From assembly GCF_001194135.2 (NCBI RefSeq), contig NC_068983.1:32613417-32677416 (forward strand): a DNA stretch of 64,000 nucleotides, in the 5' to 3' direction. Below the pieces are notes generated by a model. The model was not told the origin of the DNA and ran no database searches. It worked only from the letters and a program-made list of their open reading frames with translations. This document shows positions 6,872 through 25,417 of the stretch, one piece after another. Made by a program: the position numbers and the translations under genes. This DNA is from Octopus bimaculoides. Lineage: Eukaryota. The stretch's first letter is position 1. Each line of letters begins with the position of its first letter.

Positions 6872-7435
6872 NNNNNNNNNNNNNNNNNNNNNNNNNNNNN
6901 NNNNNNNNNNNNNNNNNNNNNNNNNNNNNNNNNNNNNNNNNNNNNNNNNNNNNNNNNNNNNNNNNNNNNNNNNNNNNNNNNNNNNNNNNNNNNNNNNNNN
7001 NNNNNNNNNNNNNNNNNNNNNNNNNNNNNNNNNNNNNNNNNNNNNNNNNNNNNNNNNNNNNNNNNNNNNNNNNNNNNNNNNNNNNNNNNNNNNNNNNNNN
7101 NNNNNNNNNNNNNNNNNNNNNNNNNNNNNNNNNNNNNNNNNNNNNNNNNNNNNNNNNNNNNNNNNNNNNNNNNNNNNNNNNNNNNNNNNNNNNNNNNNNN
7201 NNNNNNNNNNNNNNNNNNNNNNNNNNNNNNNNNNNNNNNNNNNNNNNNNNNNNNNNNNNNNNNNNNNNNNNNNNNNNNNNNNNNNNNNNNNNNNNNNNNN
7301 NNNNNNNNNNNNNNNNNNNNNNNNNNNNNNNNNNNNNNNNNNNNNNNNNNNNNNNNNNNNNNNNNNNNNNNNNNNNNNNNNNNNNNNNNNNNNNNNNNNN
7401 NNNNNNNNNNNNNNNNNNNNNNNNNNNNNNNNNNN

Positions 7436-17574: not shown

Positions 17575-17930
17575 TTCACAAAAAACAACAGACGAAAATA
17601 GGTGGTGTAGAAAACAAACAGATGTATTAGTATAGCGCTCGGGAACTGAAAAAGTCTTTAACATTTCGAGCCGAAGCTCTCCCACAGAAAGGAACACAGA
17701 AAGAAACAAGGAGAGAAAAAAATGTGTGTAGTGGTTAGCGATCTATCATGGCGATATATATATATTTCTTTTGAACTTTCCCCTTTCTCCTGTGTCTGAA
17801 GAAGAGCTTTGCTCGAAACATAAAATACCCTTTCTTTCTTTCCCTGAGCGTCTTATTAATAATTTGCATATACCACCACGCTCGCACGTTGTATTTTTCT
17901 TGTCTTTTTTCTCCGTTTTTTAAAAAATTA
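17575..17930. mobile_element. Two divergent copies of a short hammerhead-bearing repeat (probable PLE pseudo-LTR (pLTR) remnants)
   Basis: Plus copy CTGAAGA-A-GAGC-TTT-GCTC-GAAA-CATAA (17796-17823). Minus copy CTGTGGG-A-GAGC-TTCG-GCTC-GAAA-TGTTA (17659-17687). Both share a downstream GAGCG..TAATA motif with the copies at 30790-30950 and 39370-39520. Confidence 0.6.
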
Positions 17931-21084: not shown

Positions 21085-21260
21085 AAATTTCGAACCTGGG
21101 TTCTCATTCTTTAGGTATTTTTCGATGGTGTTGTAGTTGTTGTTGTTATTATTATTATTATTATTATTATTCAGGTCACTGCCTGGAATCGCACTGAGAA
21201 TCTTGGGGTTAGTAGCCCGCACTCTTAACCACTACACCATATGGCCATGGGCACCTCAGT
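21085..21260 (-). mobile_element. tRNA-head/(AAT)n module, left arm of a head-to-head pair, truncated just before the hammerhead
   Basis: Reverse complement of 21665-21840. Confidence 0.85.
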
Positions 21261-21279
21261 GAGATATGCCCACTGGCAT

Positions 21280-21660
21280 GTTGTTGGCACTCCGTCGCTT
21301 ACGACGTCGAGGGTTCCAGCTGATCCGATCAACGGAACAGCCTGCTCGTGAAATTAACGTGCAAGTGGCTGAGCACTCCACAGACACGTGTACCCTTAAC
21401 GTAGTTCTCGGGCATATTCAGCGTGACACAGTGTGACAAGGCTGACCCTTTGAATTACAGGCACAACAGAAACAGGAAGTAAGAGTGAGAGAAAGTTGTG
21501 GTGGAAGAGTACAGCAGGGTTCGCCACCATCCTCTGCCGGAGCCTCGTGGAGCTTTAGGTGTTTTCACTCAATAAACACTCACAATGCCTGGTCTGGGAA
21601 TCGAAACTGCGATCCTATGACCGCGAGTCTGCTGCCCTAACCACTGGGCTATTGCGCCTC
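21280..21660 (-). mobile_element. tRNA-derived SINE family C, inserted into the head-to-head pair with a 10-bp TSD
   Basis: Head GGAGGCGCAATAGCCCAGTGGTTAGGGCAGCAGACTCGCGGTCATAGGATCGCAGTTTCGATTCC. CCACTGGCAT is duplicated at 21270-21279 and 21660-21669. Confidence 0.8.
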
Positions 21661-21664
21661 CACT

Positions 21665-21734
21665 GGCATATGGCATAGTGGTTAAGAGCGCGTGTTACTA
21701 ACCCTAAGATTCTGAGTTCGATTCCAGGCCGTGA

Positions 21735-21779
<45 letters not shown>

Positions 21780-21985
21780 TAATAATAACGATAACAGCAT
21801 CGAAAAATACCTTAGGAATGAGAACCCAGGTTCGAAATTTCTCCAAGACACCTGATGAAGGCTGGAGAGTATATCAGCCGAAACGTTGTGTCAACAACAA
21901 ACAGGATGAGGGCAAATATCCGTCAAATGTAAATAATGTAAATAATGTACATAATTCCTCCTCTCTTAAATATAGAACTGTATAT
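21665..21985 (+). mobile_element. Complete tRNA-head + (AAT)n + hammerhead module (solo PLE pLTR or PLE-derived SINE)
   Basis: A-box TGGCATAGTGG (21671-21681), B-box GTTCGATTC (21716-21724), (AAT)n 21739-21790, hammerhead 21847-21892, then tail ..TGTAAATAATGTAAATAATGTAC. Homologous segments lie at 21085, 23017, 24306 and 24980. Confidence 0.85.
21847..21892 (+). ncRNA. Minimal type I hammerhead ribozyme with palindromic stem III
   Basis: GACAC-CTGATGA-A-GGCTG(gagagtatat)CAGCC-GAAA-C-GTT-GTGTC: stem I GACAC/GTGTC, core CUGAUGA..GAAA, 5-bp stem II, palindrome AACGTT and NUH triplet GUU. Confidence 0.8.
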
Positions 21986-22064
21986 TCTTAATGTATAATT
22001 ATTAAATTTGAGAGTTAACGAAACAAACAGCTTGAGAAATATTAGCGGTTTCAAATGTCATGGG

Positions 22065-22094
<30 letters not shown>

Positions 22095-22110
<16 letters not shown>

Positions 22111-22280
22111 TTTTTTCTCGATCCCTTTTGATCGAACTCCCCCTTTTTTCTTTCCTACGATCCATTTTGATCGACACCCCCTTTTTCTTCTCTTTCTCTC
22201 CTTCCCCCTCCCAAAAAGAAAAGCTCTACATTGTATTTGTCCCATCTGTGTTGATCCCTGTGTGGCTAATAAAAGAAATG
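22095..22280 (+). mobile_element. 3' tail of an L1/Tx1-like LINE embedded in (TATC)n
   Basis: Pyrimidine-rich UTR ending GATCCCTGTGTGGCTAATAAAAGAAAT, with TATC repeats on both sides and similarity to the tail at 13030-13056. Confidence 0.5.
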
Positions 22281-23016
22281 TATCTATCTATAATCGACTT
22301 ACCCCCGGAATCGCAAGCCTTGTGTCAAAATTTGAAACTGATATTTCTTGCTGATAAAGTGATATATGACTTTATCACTGTATAAAGTGATTTATCACTT
22401 TACTTCTTTATATTTCTGGTTGATTTATATACCAACCATTTATGACGTCAACAACCTTTATTTATTCTGTGGATAAACGAGTAATTGCTTTTAGTTCAAG
22501 ACTTGTTGACAAACCTGAATAGTCATCGACATATAGAGATATGTTACGAGGGAACTTGTGGGAAATATCTTATCCAATATATTTTTCAGCACGTTTTTTT
22601 CATTAACATAGACATAAATTCATAGCGCCGACTGAATGTTGAGTTGCTGTGCAATCTTGCAGATTAAATATCTCACTGAGATGCACTAAAATTGCACTGC
22701 CCGGGTTCATATACGGTGCGACTATCTACTATACATACATACATACATGCATACACACACATACATACACACAAACATATATTTACATATGTGAGTAAGC
22801 ATATATGTGTATGTATAAGCATAAGTATATGTATAAGCATATGTATATGTATATGTATAAGCATAAGTATAAGCATATGTGAGTAAGCATATATGTGCGT
22901 GCTTATAGAGAGAACGAGGGAAAGAGAAAGAGAGAGGGAAAGACAAAGAGAGAGAAAGAGAGAGAGAGGGAAACAGAAAGAGAGAGCGAGTGAGAGAGAG
23001 ACTAAAACATATACAC

Positions 23017-23159
23017 ATTATTTACAATTGACGGATTTTTGTCCTCATCTTGTTTGTTGTTTACACAACGTTTCGTCTGATATACTCTCCAGCTTTCATC
23101 AGATGTCTTGGGGGAATTTCGAATCTGGATTCTCATTCCTTAGGTACTTTTCGATGTCG

Positions 23160-23212
<53 letters not shown>
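23017..23212 (-). mobile_element. Hammerhead/tail half of the PLE pLTR module (decayed stem II)
   Basis: Minus strand (AAT)n-CATCGAAAAGTACCTAAGGAATGAG..GACAT-CTGATGA-AAGCTG..CAGAC-GAAA-CGTT-GTGTA.., homologous to 21795-21940. Confidence 0.85.
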
Positions 23213-23215
<3 letters not shown>

Positions 23216-24072
23216 TAGTTTTATTTTTATAACGTGCTTTCACTTCACTACCGAGCGCAGCTCTGTGCGCCTTGGGTATGTGCTGTGGTTTGCTGTGGTG
23301 CTCTTATGTTTACTGTATTGAAAGTGTTTTGCGTAGAATGTGTGCAGTACCCAGTAGTGCAATTTTCTGTATGTTATATATATTTGTAAGTCCTGGTGTT
23401 TTTGTTATGTATTTGTCTGAATATTTTTTTATTATACCTAAGGCACCTACTATGATAGGAATTGTTTCTGTTTTTAGATTCCACATTCGAGTTATCTCTA
23501 TTTCCAGGTCTNNNNNNNNNNNNNNNNNNNNNNNNNNNNNNNNNNNNNNNNNNNNNNNNNNNNNNNNNNNNNNNNNNNNNNNNNNNNNNNNNNNNNNNNN
23601 NNNNNNNNNNNNNNNNNNNNNNNNNNNNNNNNNNNNNNNNNNNNNNNNNNNNNNNNNNNNNNNNNNNNNNNNNNNNNNNNNNNNNNNNNNNNNNNNNNNN
23701 NNNNNNNNNNNNNNNNNNNNNNNNNNNNNNNNNNNNNNNNNNNNNNNNNNNNNNNNNNNNNNNNNNNNNNNNNNNNNNNNNNNNNNNNNNNNNNNNNNNN
23801 NNNNNNNNNNNNNNNNNNNNNNNNNNNNNNNNNNNNNNNNNNNNNNNNNNNNCAGTTACTTGTTATATTTCTTTTCATTATGTGTTTTTGGTAATTTCTG
23901 GTGGGGAGGCTCTGGTCTTGTGCAGCAATTAAAAATCCTTCAGTCTCTGCTTTGAGTCCTGAGCTTCTCAGCCATTGCTGGGATTTTTCTCTGTCTATTT
24001 CTTTCGCATTTAGTTTAGCCCAGTATTTACCATGTAGGGGCTTTTCTTGCCATCGTTTTATCATGGTCCGTC
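23213..24072 (-). mobile_element. 5'-truncated R4/Dong-type RLE LINE inserted in the (AAT)n of the PLE module
   Basis: MIKRWQEKPLHGKYW..QWLRSSGLKAETEGFLIAAQDQSLPTRNY. After the gap comes the RLE C-terminus (..IVGALGIIKKY..IQKIALLGTAHILRKTLSIQ*), then a 3' UTR ending in (AAT)n. Confidence 0.88.
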
Positions 24073-24304
24073 GCTGTTCTAGTTTTAGTTTGGATTTCCG
24101 TTGCTGTTCTAGTTTTAGTTTGGATTTCTGCTGTTCTAGTTTTAGTTTGGATTTCTTATTGTTCTAGTTTTAGTTTGGTTTTCTGCTGTTCTAGTTTTAG
24201 TTTGGATTTCTTATTGTTCTAGTTTTAGTTTGGATTTCTGCTGTTCTAGTTTTAGTTTGGATTTCTTACTTCTAGTTTTAGTTTGGATTTCGTTCTAGTT
24301 TTAG

Positions 24305-24307
<3 letters not shown>
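24073..24307. repeat. Tandem array of a 24-30-bp unit (core TTCTAGTTTTAGTTTGGATTTC), 8 full copies plus 1 partial
   Basis: Directly visible. The innermost unit is in frame with the LINE ORF (KSKLKLEQRRTMIKRW). Confidence 0.92.
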
Positions 24308-24355
<48 letters not shown>

Positions 24356-24960
24356 CTTTGGGTTAGTAGCCCGCGCTCTTAACCACTACGCCGTATGCCC
24401 GTGGGCAATTTTGGAGTGAATTTTAGGGCTTATAAATCTAATATTCTCCTATTCTTCCTTAATACTGGTTCCCATATGCTGTTCATATCTGCACTCGGTC
24501 TGCTTAGGAGGTTGTTGTGCCCTAGCATATGTGCTGCTTCTTTTAGTTCTCGTATTTTCTAGTGATGTTCTCTGTCTATTATTTTAACTTCATCCCACAG
24601 GGGGAGGTGGTCTCCATTTTAGCATACATGATCGGTTATACCCGATTTATCAATATCTCCCCGTGCCACAGCTTAGCGATGTTCCTCTACCCTTATTTTG
24701 AGGGGGCGACATGTTTCGCCTTTGTATAACCTACCACAGCTGCATGGGCTGGAGTACACACAGTTCTTAGTCATATTCTCTTCTATTGGTGGTTTTACTC
24801 GAAGGAGACATTTGCGAAGTGTTGTATTACTTTTGAATACTGTCCTGATGTCATATGGGCCGCATATCTTTTGTATCTTTTTGGAGAGGCCTTTCACATA
24901 GGGTAGACAGACTGTGTGGACAGTTTATCAGTTTCATCCACTCTTTTCTTCATAATTGGA
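24306..24960 (-). mobile_element. 5'-truncated PLE: GIY-YIG C-terminus followed by a tRNA-like head and (AAT)n
   Basis: (LPYV)KGLSKKIQKICGPYDIRTVFKS..NCVYSSPCSCGRLYKGETCRPLKIRVEEHR..SGITDHV..WDEVKIIDREHH*KIRELKEAAH..; about 25 nt after the ORF stop comes TGCCCACGGGCATACGGCGTAGTGGTTAAGAGCGCGGGCTACTAACCC. The B-box part is deleted in this copy. Confidence 0.88.
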
Positions 24961-24979
24961 GTGAAGAGTATGCTTTTGA

Positions 24980-25078
24980 ACCTGAAGGCTGGAGGGTATA
25001 TCAGCCGAAACGTTGTGTTAACAACAAACAAGATGAGGACAAATATCTCTCAATTGTAAATAATGTAAATAATGTACG
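24980..25078 (+). mobile_element. Inverted partial pLTR (hammerhead 3' half and tail) at the 5' truncation point of the PLE
   Basis: TGAAGGCTGGAGGGTATATCAGCCGAAACGTTGTG..TGTAAATAATGTAAATAATGTAC matches 21856-21950, in opposite orientation to the PLE ORF. Confidence 0.85.
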
Positions 25079-25159
25079 AAATACCGCTAAGCATTTCGCC
25101 CGACGTGCTAACGATTCTGCTAGCTCGCCGCTTTTAATAATGATTCCACATTTTTCCAC

Positions 25160-25352
25160 AAGAGCAGCAATTTTGAGGGAGAGGATCAGTCGATTACATC
25201 GTCCTCAATATTCAACTGGTACTTAATTTATCGACCCCGAAAGGATGAAAGGTAAAGTCGACCTCGGCGGATTTGAACTCTGAACGTAGCAACAGATGAA
25301 ATACCGCTAAACGATTTTGTCCGGTGCATTAAGATTCTGCCAGCTCTCCGCC
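25160..25352 (-). mobile_element. SINE family A
   Basis: Reverse family A core GGTACTTAATTTATCGACCCCGAAAGGATGAAAGGTAAAGTCGACCTCGGCGG. Confidence 0.85.
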
Positions 25353-25354
25353 TG

Positions 25355-25417
25355 AATAATAATAATAATAATAATAATGATGATGATGATGACGACGACG
25401 ACGACGACGACGACGAC

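Follow-up and report, generated by a model that had tools for sequence, protein, structure and literature searches.

The window that we analysed, a stretch of 64,000 nucleotides (64 kb) from Octopus bimaculoides (contig NC_068983.1, positions 32,613,417 to 32,677,416), contains at 21085-25085 two old insertions of a single canonical Penelope-like element (PLE) family. The 3' noncoding end of this PLE, which is also the terminal repeat of the element, consists, after the stop codon, of a leader, a 12-nt palindrome, a decayed tRNA-derived segment with A and B boxes (the head), an (AAT)n repeat, a conserved segment of ~50 nt, a minimal hammerhead ribozyme and a tail of 70-110 nt that occurs in two 3' end forms, short and long. 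BLAST and profile searches for this module, of the kind that an initial annotation of the window had proposed, found exactly four pieces (A to D) in the 64 kb, all of them within 21085-25085 (Table 1), and the same junction between open reading frame (ORF) and head was found at further octopus loci. Insertion 1 was split by a later Dong/R4-like long interspersed nuclear element (LINE) in its (AAT)n, and arm A of insertion 2 by a later short interspersed nuclear element (SINE). We found no target-site duplications (TSDs) for either window insertion; copy B is truncated and arm D adjoins another SINE.

Table 1. Pieces of the PLE, and the elements inserted into them, at 21085-25085 of the window
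Feature	Positions	Strand	Content
Insertion 2	21085-21982		ORF-less head-to-head pair; copy A alone complete
Copy B (piece B), ORF-less, 3'-side-truncated	21253-21085	-	Head, (AAT)n and first ~43 nt past the repeat; palindrome TGCCCATGGCCA 21253-21242; box A TGGTGTAGTGG 21239-21229; box B AGTGCGATTCC 21195-21185
Spacer between arms B and A	21254-21266		13 nt, cctcagtgagata
Copy A (piece A)	21267-21279 and 21660-21982	+	Complete unit
Copy A, start	21267-21279	+	First 13 nt, palindrome TGCCCACTGGCA plus T, severed by the later SINE
Nested tRNA-derived SINE, unrelated to the PLE	21280-21659	-	Boxes TAGCCCAGTGG and GTTTCGATTCC, 33 nt apart; Arg-like TCG anticodon loop
Copy A, remainder	21660-21982	+	Box A 21671-21681; box B 21715-21725; (AAT)n 21739-21774; AAT/AAC-rich to ~21795
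Insertion 1	23017-25078		5'-truncated ORF copy and 3' end, split by a LINE, with a short inverted arm on the far side
Copy C (piece C)	Head 24407-24308, tail half 23212-23017	-	ORF-linked unit, split by the insert
Copy C, distal half	23017-23212	-	(AAT)n 23212-23165; conserved segment; hammerhead 23107-23062; short-form tail to ~23017
Dong/R4-like LINE, 5'-truncated	23213-24307	-	Sits in the (AAT)n of copy C; carries the gap 23512-23852; 3' end ...CTACTGAATAAT(AAT)n
Copy C, proximal half	24308-24407	-	Palindrome TGCCCACGGGCA 24407-24396; box A CGGCGTAGTGG 24393-24383; (AAT)n 24352-24308
PLE ORF remnant and post-stop leader	24408-24975	-	C-terminal GIY-YIG endonuclease part alone, motif NCVYSSPCSCGRLYKGETCRPLKIRVEEHR
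Arm D (piece D)	24983-25078	+	Tail fragment alone; 5'-side-truncated inverted copy from hammerhead core to tail end ...aataatgtac

The ORF that had been placed at 24960-24430 on the minus strand is the C-terminus of a PLE protein, as claimed, but it is decayed and holds the endonuclease only, with no reverse transcriptase (RT). This remnant (~24975-24430) is 65.6% identical over 157 aa to the protein P0005, to whose residues 63-219 alone it aligns, and 83% and 75% identical to proteins of O. vulgaris and O. sinensis. The minus-strand translation of 24990-24400 (...LPYVKGLSKKIQKICGPYDIRTVFKS...NCVYSSPCSCGRLYKGETCRPLKIRVEEHR, then a stop) contains the GIY-YIG core with an embedded Cys/His zinc-finger-like motif, the columns of which are conserved in our alignment A1. 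There are three in-frame stops and at least one frameshift near 24900-24960, at the 5' end, and the present stop is at 24430-24432, the family's own stop lying ~25 nt upstream of it. Relatives of the remnant (65-83% identity) carry RVT_1, HTH_animal and the endonuclease in a single ORF, and the RT is missing here because the copy is 5'-truncated. The Pfam GIY-YIG model did not match the window fragment and matched weakly in a more distant PLE (L008, see below); other Pfam models were uninformative on the window fragments. Since no CX2-5CxxC linker lies upstream of the GIY-YIG core, the element is not of the Neptune or Nematis type, and we take the remnant to be an old, 5'-truncated copy of a canonical endonuclease-positive (EN+) PLE. 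No other PLE coding remnants were found in the window.

The sequence TGCCCACGGGCATACGGCGTAGTGG, which the initial annotation had quoted as following the stop by about 25 nt, together with (AAT)n, is found at 24407 to 24353 and runs directly into the repeat. Of the A and B boxes said to stand next to the ORF, the head of copy C has kept box A; box B is deleted, the head stopping after ...ACTAACCCAAAGATT, and is intact in an ORF-linked copy of O. sinensis (L002 2441-2522). With the LINE taken out, the head and the hammerhead half are joined via one (AAT)n, so that the unit does continue into the hammerhead and the tail at 23212-23017, as had been predicted. The hammerhead of copy C has an intact core, a helix II weakened to AGCUG/CAGAC (two mismatches) and a predicted cut between 23067 and 23066. 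On the far side, arm D, truncated within the hammerhead core, adjoins the ORF remnant head to head, and the same layout is seen in L001, L002, L003, L004, L009 and L012. There is no direct 5' terminal repeat in the window itself. We noted that the inverted arms of L001 (5048-4969) and L002 (4218-4166) begin 13 nt downstream of the predicted hammerhead cut; these two arms might derive from the 3' cleavage fragment, but this would not be general, as arm D and the L004 arm begin upstream of the cut.

The junction from ORF stop to head is common to four ORF-linked copies in three octopus species: copy C of the window, L001 5068-5648, L002 5278-6064 and L002 2192-2710. The comparison loci had been fetched via protein relatives in O. 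vulgaris and O. sinensis, and the last of these copies was by-catch. All share the order ORF end, leader of ~50 nt, palindrome and head, (AAT)n, hammerhead and tail, and the junction (AAT)n(AAC)n-CATCGAAAAATACC is identical in every copy. Moreover, L001 and L002 are single insertions within TSDs (ATTTTAAA and ATAAGTACC, respectively), within which a tail arm, short and inverted, is followed by an ORF that is 5'-truncated and by head, (AAT)n, hammerhead and tail; because the duplications enclose the whole structure, ORF and module arrived together as one cDNA event. A family at ~72% nucleotide identity in the assembly ERZ21867824 has the same layout in copies L004, L006, L010a and L010b, and in L004 the whole structure lies within a 10-bp duplication, AATTCTAGTT. 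In a third lineage (L012, assembly ERZ16307053) the ORF is intact (730 aa); upstream of it lie an inverted arm and then a direct repeat, made up of a head truncated inside box A, box B, hammerhead and tail, which runs into the ATG, and downstream lie the leader and a full head. The layout of L012 is direct evidence that the head is part of the terminal repeat.

Leader and head can be aligned at the same position across the three lineages (octopus, ERZ21867824 and ERZ16307053). A more distant PLE, 45% identical (L008, ERZ26693581), has a minimal hammerhead after its ORF without A or B boxes, and the head is therefore an addition specific to the clade. In the two ERZ lineages the head is followed by the hammerhead with no (AAT)n, in the place of which stands GAGTAATAT; this TAATAT-like sequence is a plausible seed from which the octopus (AAT)n grew. 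Thus, the head is very probably a native, co-mobilised part of the PLE, and the claim that the terminal repeat itself carries a tRNA-type head is borne out by the junction in four octopus copies, inside TSDs, and in two further assemblies; the junction at ~24410 is not peculiar to this locus. The copies L003, L005, L007 and L009, with disrupted 3' regions, were uninformative on the head. Searches for further PLE relatives gave no pattern match in viral contigs and 181 in metagenome contigs, none of which was confirmed, and a third protein search for relatives returned almost solely ERZ21867824 proteins and yielded no full-length octopus copy. None of the octopus SINEs of the window is shared by ERZ21867824. 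As a separate observation, two independent PLE copies of ERZ21867824, L003 and L009, end at the same nucleotide (2710 and 6643, respectively, after ...gtaa(a)gaac), ~37 nt upstream of the head region, with unrelated sequence and no visible TSD past the breakpoint; this could be a hotspot of later insertion or a second 3' end form.

We compared the head with the box consensus of tRNA-type promoters, TRGCNNAGTGG for box A and GGTTCGANTCC for box B. Box A agrees at 11 of 11 positions in copy A (TGGCATAGTGG) and in L002b (TGGCGTAGTGG), and in both copies box B (AGTTCGATTCC) agrees at 10 of 11 positions and lies 33 nt past box A, which is tRNA spacing. Two pairs of an A box and a B box with tRNA spacing are present in the window, one belonging to copy A and the other to a neighbouring SINE, compared to 0.03 expected from shuffled sequence. 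The boxes of the ERZ lineages, TAGCGTAACGG and GGTTCAATCCT in one and TGGAGCAGTGG and GGTTCAATCCC in the other, are 52-53 nt apart. No part of the head is better kept across the three lineages than the A and B boxes, and because they were kept while the spacer changed (33 compared to 52-53 nt), a promoter fits better than a fold. On visual inspection, a D-arm (GCGU/GCGC) and a sequence resembling an anticodon loop (CUACUAA) can be made out in the head, which ends ...GTGACCTGAATAAT. Runs of four T (T4) are absent from the sense strand of most copies of the unit, which is compatible with RNA polymerase III (Pol III) transcription, but weakly so. Our call from sequence is that the head is a tRNA-derived, promoter-like segment and not a tRNA-like structure.

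The hammerhead of copy A reads GACAC-CUGAUGA-A-GGCUG(N10)CAGCC-GAAAC-GUU/GUGUC (the slash marks the predicted cut), with helix I GACAC/GUGUC, the core CUGAUGA at 21852-21858, an unpaired A at 21859, helix II GGCUG/CAGCC, GAAA at 21880-21883 and the palindrome AACGUU. The initial annotation had a hammerhead following (AAT)n with cleavage at 21888, and we likewise predict the cut between U21887 (U17) and G21888 and find covarying helices. The pairing of helices I and II, over eight copies that represent two lineages, is 82.5%, compared to 16-55% in slid controls; three pairs are changed on both sides (GGCUG/CAGCC, GACUG/CAGUC, GGCCG/CGGCC), and the covariation score of these eight related sequences was reached in 1 of 500 shuffles. 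In copy A both helices are in the minimum-energy fold (z = -2.8). PLE minimal hammerheads are marked by a short helix I, a nucleotide left unpaired 5' of stem II and a helix III that is palindromic, and require dimers for cutting (PMC4209133). The window hammerhead, with its helix I of 5 bp, is by prediction such a PLE-type minimal, dimer-dependent type I ribozyme. Elsewhere in the window we noted further CUGANGA...GAAAC motifs at 17788-17833 (plus strand) and at 39452-39407, 15248-15202 and 3057-2989 (all minus strand). CUGA(A/U)GA-A-GAGC...CUC-GAAAC, in which the same A is unpaired, is common to the first two. None of these additional motifs has a PLE coding remnant nearby, and they may be relics of other PLE hammerhead families.

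Insertion 2 has no ORF. At the place where an ORF-less module had been reported (21665-21985) there is a complete unit, though it truly starts at 21267 and ends at ~21982, the nested SINE splitting off its first 13 nt. Without the SINE, copy A measures ~335 nt; it has the conserved segment at 21797-21846, the hammerhead at 21847-21892 and a long-form tail ending ...tagaactgta at ~21982, with no run of four or more T on its strand. The tails of copy A and of the ORF-linked copy C are 90% identical, and we identify the tail of the window unit as that of the PLE and not of a LINE. The inverted module that had been reported at 21085-21260 has the head and (AAT)n, from 21253 to 21085, but neither a hammerhead nor a tail: copy B, with one mismatch to the consensus in box A and two in box B, continues through (AAT)n at 21171-21148, AAC-rich repeats and the beginning of the post-repeat segment to stop at ...GGTTCGAAATTT. 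The nested SINE lies within a target duplication, ccactggcat, at 21270-21279 and 21660-21669 (6-10 bp). It could be a member of one of the OR families of octopus SINEs (Ohshima and Okada).

Arms A and B stand head to head, 13 nt apart, and both start at the T of TGCCCA, upstream of which they no longer match the ORF-linked leader. This start is the first base of a 12-nt near-palindrome, TGCCCA(C/T)GGGCA, with which the ORF-less units begin and which precedes box A by 14 nt (21267-21278, 21253-21242 and 24407-24396 in the window, and ~7040-7075 in L001), and is not conserved in the two non-octopus lineages. In a second ORF-less pair (L001 6760-7160), the arms are joined exactly at a single shared palindrome, as if a cDNA end had snapped back and primed the second strand; the arm at 7064-7260 has the head and a long (AAT)n but no PLE tail. 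ORF-linked copies, unlike these palindrome-started events, are truncated at four different positions in the ORF. Because the 5' start is fixed and stands as far from box A as a Pol III start would be expected to, a reading of the ORF-less copies as SINE-like units is favoured. Solo terminal repeats thus exist, as had been claimed, in the form of two ORF-less events that both start from the palindrome, although only copy A is complete and they are not in excess over the ORF-linked events. We found no tandem direct hammerhead repeats, the mark of retrozymes, in the window, where the copies are inverted or dispersed.

The LINE within copy C has (AAT)n on both flanks (24308-24352 and 23165-23212), and elements of the Dong type target (TAA)n. 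The LINE also contains the assembly gap, which leaves the PLE ORF, head and hammerhead untouched. The sequences on either side of the gap lie on the same strand, are collinear and belong to a single LINE C-terminus, with an endonuclease of the R2/R4 type: upstream of it, on the minus strand, are encoded ...MIKRWQEKPLHGKYW...AAQDQSLPTRNYQKHIMKRNITSN, and downstream DLEIEITRMWNLKTETIPIIVGALG...LLGTAHILRKTLSIQ, followed by a stop. Both pieces match the same proteins in the correct order, one being 89% identical to an O. bimaculoides protein. In the homologues P0121, P0122, P0125 and P0126 the pieces are 122-123 aa (~366-369 nt) apart, compared to 341 N in the window, and in these proteins the stretch that corresponds to the gap comprises a CCHC knuckle and RHD...RPDIV...D...K, which is how the restriction-like endonuclease of R2/R4-type LINEs is laid out. 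With 341 N between them the pieces are out of frame, but this gap length is an estimate and the frame is hence uninformative. No second copy of the insert was found in the sequences compared, and the gap was bridged by the protein homologues instead. The insert, a truncated copy, has no RT. The initial annotation called it Dong; the R2/R4-type endonuclease and the (AAT)n flanks agree with this, and assignment to the Dong/R4 clade is reasonable though not proven. Among the LINE groups of O. vulgaris, Dong-R4 is the most active when judged from recent insertions and coverage (PMC13282606). At the 5' side of the truncated LINE (~24040-24300, minus strand) there is a minisatellite with ~9 units of ~28-30 bp (ctagttttagtttggatttc...), which translates as repeated KSKLKLEQQ. 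We also noted that three unrelated elements share the end CTGAATAAT(AAT)n, namely the SINE at 25079-25378 (plus strand), the Dong-like LINE at 23213-23230 (minus strand) and the PLE head at 21726-21745 (plus strand); the PLE head with (AAT)n may also resemble a Dong-type 3' end. Between the two PLE insertions lie simple repeats, (TATC)n, (CATA/TG)n and (GA)n, at 22066-22110 and 22720-23010. Rfam matches to mir-3149 and mir-297 (E down to 5e-8) at 22700-22900 were rejected as low-complexity artefacts on simple sequence rich in TG and TA.

We propose the following account of these structures. The PLE RT would recognise the tail and initiate target-primed reverse transcription there, such that any RNA bearing the tail could be copied; the short and long tail forms fit a reverse transcription that is initiated internally at neighbouring sites, which has been reported for a PLE of Anolis (PMC11167929). 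The A and B boxes would act as a type 2 Pol III promoter, from which short ORF-less RNAs would start ~14 nt upstream of box A, at the palindrome. Those RNAs that the dimer-requiring hammerhead leaves uncut would be copied in trans by the PLE enzyme, and the hammerhead may thereby decide which RNAs remain copyable. The product would be a SINE-like unit with a fixed 5' end, and each terminal repeat would carry the seed of the element's own SINE. We give this account as a whole, structure and mechanism together, a probability of roughly 0.55. On the separate point that the head is a working Pol III promoter that makes the ORF-less copies, the boxes and the fixed start leave us just short of even odds. 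We would suggest still more tentatively that a clade of canonical PLEs (octopus, ERZ21867824 and ERZ16307053) keeps a working tRNA-derived type 2 Pol III promoter in each terminal repeat, just upstream of the hammerhead, with every insertion seeding a Pol III-made, PLE-dependent SINE.

Several observations weigh against this account. Cleavage by the hammerhead would part the promoter-like head from the tail that reverse transcription needs, and for this reason solo units that were "self-cleaved and re-mobilised", as had been suggested, would lose the promoter unless they stayed uncut or were re-ligated. The Rfam hammerhead models gave no match at the gathering threshold or at E <= 10 in the window, its sub-regions or L012; minimal PLE variants do not have the helix III that these models expect. 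Copy B has no tail, where reverse transcription should have started, and the boxes of the ERZ lineages are weaker when compared to the strict consensus (A 9-10/11, B 8-9/11). Other observations of this kind would be expected if the head were a relic carried as a passenger, that is, if an ancient tRNA-derived SINE, or a template switch onto a tRNA-like RNA, had been fixed in the 3' untranslated region of a master copy with no promoter function; the ORF-less copies would then be ordinary 5' truncations, the ends of which pile up at the palindrome by stalling of the RT or by snap-back of the cDNA. The head has no tRNA fold and no score with tRNA models: it was not called a tRNA by ARAGORN (at default settings; marginal calls appeared only at 80% thresholds) or by the Rfam tRNA model (E <= 10), although these tests are insensitive here because the clearly tRNA-derived nested SINE at 21280-21659 also fails them. 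Box B is wholly or partly lost in three of the four ORF-linked octopus heads, that of copy C included, and the old octopus copies that have lost it are under no constraint. ORF-less and ORF-linked events are equally frequent (2 compared to 2 in the unselected sequence, ~78 kb of octopus DNA), with no sign of SINE-like copy number or of a burst. The L001 pair shares one palindrome, as a snap-back junction would, and the only near-solo copy in ERZ21867824 (L010a) begins within the ORF end and not at the head, as a plain 5' truncation. What makes such a relic less likely than the account above, in our view, is that the boxes remained the best-kept parts of the head in three lineages in spite of the changed spacer, that the palindrome start lies where a Pol III start would be expected, and that the palindrome is not conserved in the other two lineages, such that a universal stall signal of the family is improbable.

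We also considered that the head might act in cis for the PLE itself, as a Pol III promoter that transcribes the whole element from the upstream repeat, with the hammerhead trimming the leader, or else as a site for RNase P or Z or a TFIIIC boundary. A parallel exists in R2, which is made by Pol I and trimmed by a ribozyme like that of hepatitis delta virus. In agreement with such a role, the repeat head of L012 lies ~190 nt upstream of the hammerhead, the cut site of which is ~110 nt upstream of the ATG, and the young copies L012 171-3140, L004 4325-7100 and L009 4374-6643 have no T4 run on the whole sense strand (2.3-3.0 kb), compared to three such runs in 1.9 kb of the headless L008. A4 runs occur at the expected level in L012, L004 and L009, and the Phe codons of L012 are 13 TTC to 1 TTT. 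However, the absence of T runs is mostly a matter of composition: the depletion over whole elements is suggestive with mononucleotide shuffles, P = 0.003-0.14 with dinucleotide shuffles (0.14 for L012), and not significant with codon-preserving shuffles (P = 0.36 for the L012 ORF). In addition, the head in the 5' repeat of L012 is truncated inside box A, and the head offers RNase P or Z no tRNA fold as a substrate. To our knowledge, Pol III transcripts of ~3 kb are not established for any retrotransposon, and this counts against transcription of the whole element. We thus regard a role in cis as improbable, and its boldest form, in which the whole element is made by Pol III and trimmed by the hammerhead, as more doubtful still. 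Two further explanations would deny that head and PLE form a unit. In one, two separate elements met at (AAT)n, the head with CTGA(AAT)n being a tiny SINE mobilised by Dong/R4 and the hammerhead with the tail a PLE fragment that targets (AAT)n. The ends of the head, of the Dong-like LINE (Table 1) and of the SINE at 25300-25378 (...CCGCCTGAATAAT) would agree with this, as would the (TAA)n targets of Dong-type elements and the one L001 arm with a head, a long (AAT)n and no tail. This reading is contradicted for these copies by the junction past (AAT)n, the same in every copy, and by TSDs that enclose both parts as one insertion, while the ERZ lineages keep the order of head and hammerhead with GAGTAATAT instead of (AAT)n; we consider it very improbable. 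The other, that an ordinary SINE landed by chance beside a PLE fragment at one locus, might be entertained because octopus genomes consist to a large extent of SINEs (PMC8967140) and the window is rich in nested insertions, but it is refuted by the recurrence of the junction, which is present at four loci of three species as well as in two other lineages and sits inside TSD-bounded insertions in L001 and L002, and we give it next to no weight.

Parts of this picture are already known, namely the hammerheads of PLEs, Sm-alpha and the proposed origin of retrozymes from PLE terminal repeats. Like the canonical EN+ PLEs Penelope and Poseidon (PMC4209133, PMC8557442, PMC11167929), the octopus element has an inverted arm with a direct copy, or direct terminal repeats, a tail with alternative 3' ends, a type I hammerhead of the minimal kind and dual hammerheads on opposite strands; what differs is the A/B-box segment, with (AAT)n in octopus, that is added between stop codon and hammerhead. 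In the literature that could be searched on PLEs, retrozymes, mollusc SINEs and cephalopod repeats, a scope that excludes Repbase and Dfam, we found no mention of PLE terminal repeats that contain a tRNA or Pol III unit, nor of cephalopod hammerheads; the PLE papers among it likewise name no SINE heads in these repeats. Octopus repeat libraries contain ~900 families of "unclassified SINE" (PMC13282606), some of which may be derivatives of PLE terminal repeats.

The animal non-LTR (long terminal repeat) retrozymes (PMC7761336; bioRxiv 10.64898/2026.07.22.740005) share with the window copies an ORF-less hammerhead unit that is related to the PLE terminal repeat and presumed to be mobilised by PLEs, and have been proposed to be nonautonomous derivatives of such repeats (bioRxiv 10.64898/2026.07.22.740005). 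Retrozymes, however, have tandem hammerhead repeats and circular RNAs, with no tRNA head reported, whereas tandem direct repeats are absent here. Elements of the Cassandra type and similar ones also carry Pol III-type units derived from small-RNA genes in retrotransposon repeats or ends, but these are LTR elements or the 5' end of a LINE, without a ribozyme, and those of the Cassandra type are nonautonomous; here the unit is in a PLE with a hammerhead. Classical tRNA-derived SINEs (Ohshima and Okada) have their 3' tail in common with a LINE partner. The window unit resembles them in its A/B-box head, its noncoding body and a 3' tail identical to the one that the autonomous partner carries, but the partner is a PLE and has the head as well, such that the SINE would be a sub-transcript and not a chimera assembled elsewhere.

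A further likeness is to Sm-alpha and Sj-alpha of schistosomes (PMC6765202, PMC2770079), which are likewise short noncoding retroposons with a tRNA-derived type of Pol III promoter followed by a hammerhead; the Sm-alpha head is described there as tRNA-Gln-like (PMC2770079). According to the same texts, Sm-alpha has a canonical, efficiently cleaving hammerhead, largely in tandem arrays, and more than 10,000 copies, in contrast to the minimal dimer type and the dispersed or inverted copies found here, and those texts name no autonomous element with the same promoter-ribozyme unit, which in octopus lies inside an autonomous PLE; the likeness noted here is one of architecture. Cleavage in Sm-alpha is described as leaving the promoter on the wrong fragment, such that uncut or multimeric RNA is needed (PMC6765202). 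If the octopus boxes are active, the dimer-only hammerhead could act as a switch between uncut, copyable RNA and cut RNA, a PLE could spawn its own SINE as a sub-transcript of its terminal repeat, and this would provide a concrete model for the origin of Sm-alpha-like elements. PLEs, hammerheads, Sm-alpha-type SINEs and retrozymes have so far been linked by resemblance and co-distribution only; here a tRNA-type promoter unit and the PLE hammerhead occur together in an autonomous PLE, move as one insertion and are kept across three lineages. If every insertion does seed a Pol III-made, PLE-dependent SINE, this would supply the physical link that has been missing between autonomous PLEs on the one side and, on the other, hammerhead SINEs with a tRNA head, Sm-alpha among them, and perhaps retrozymes.

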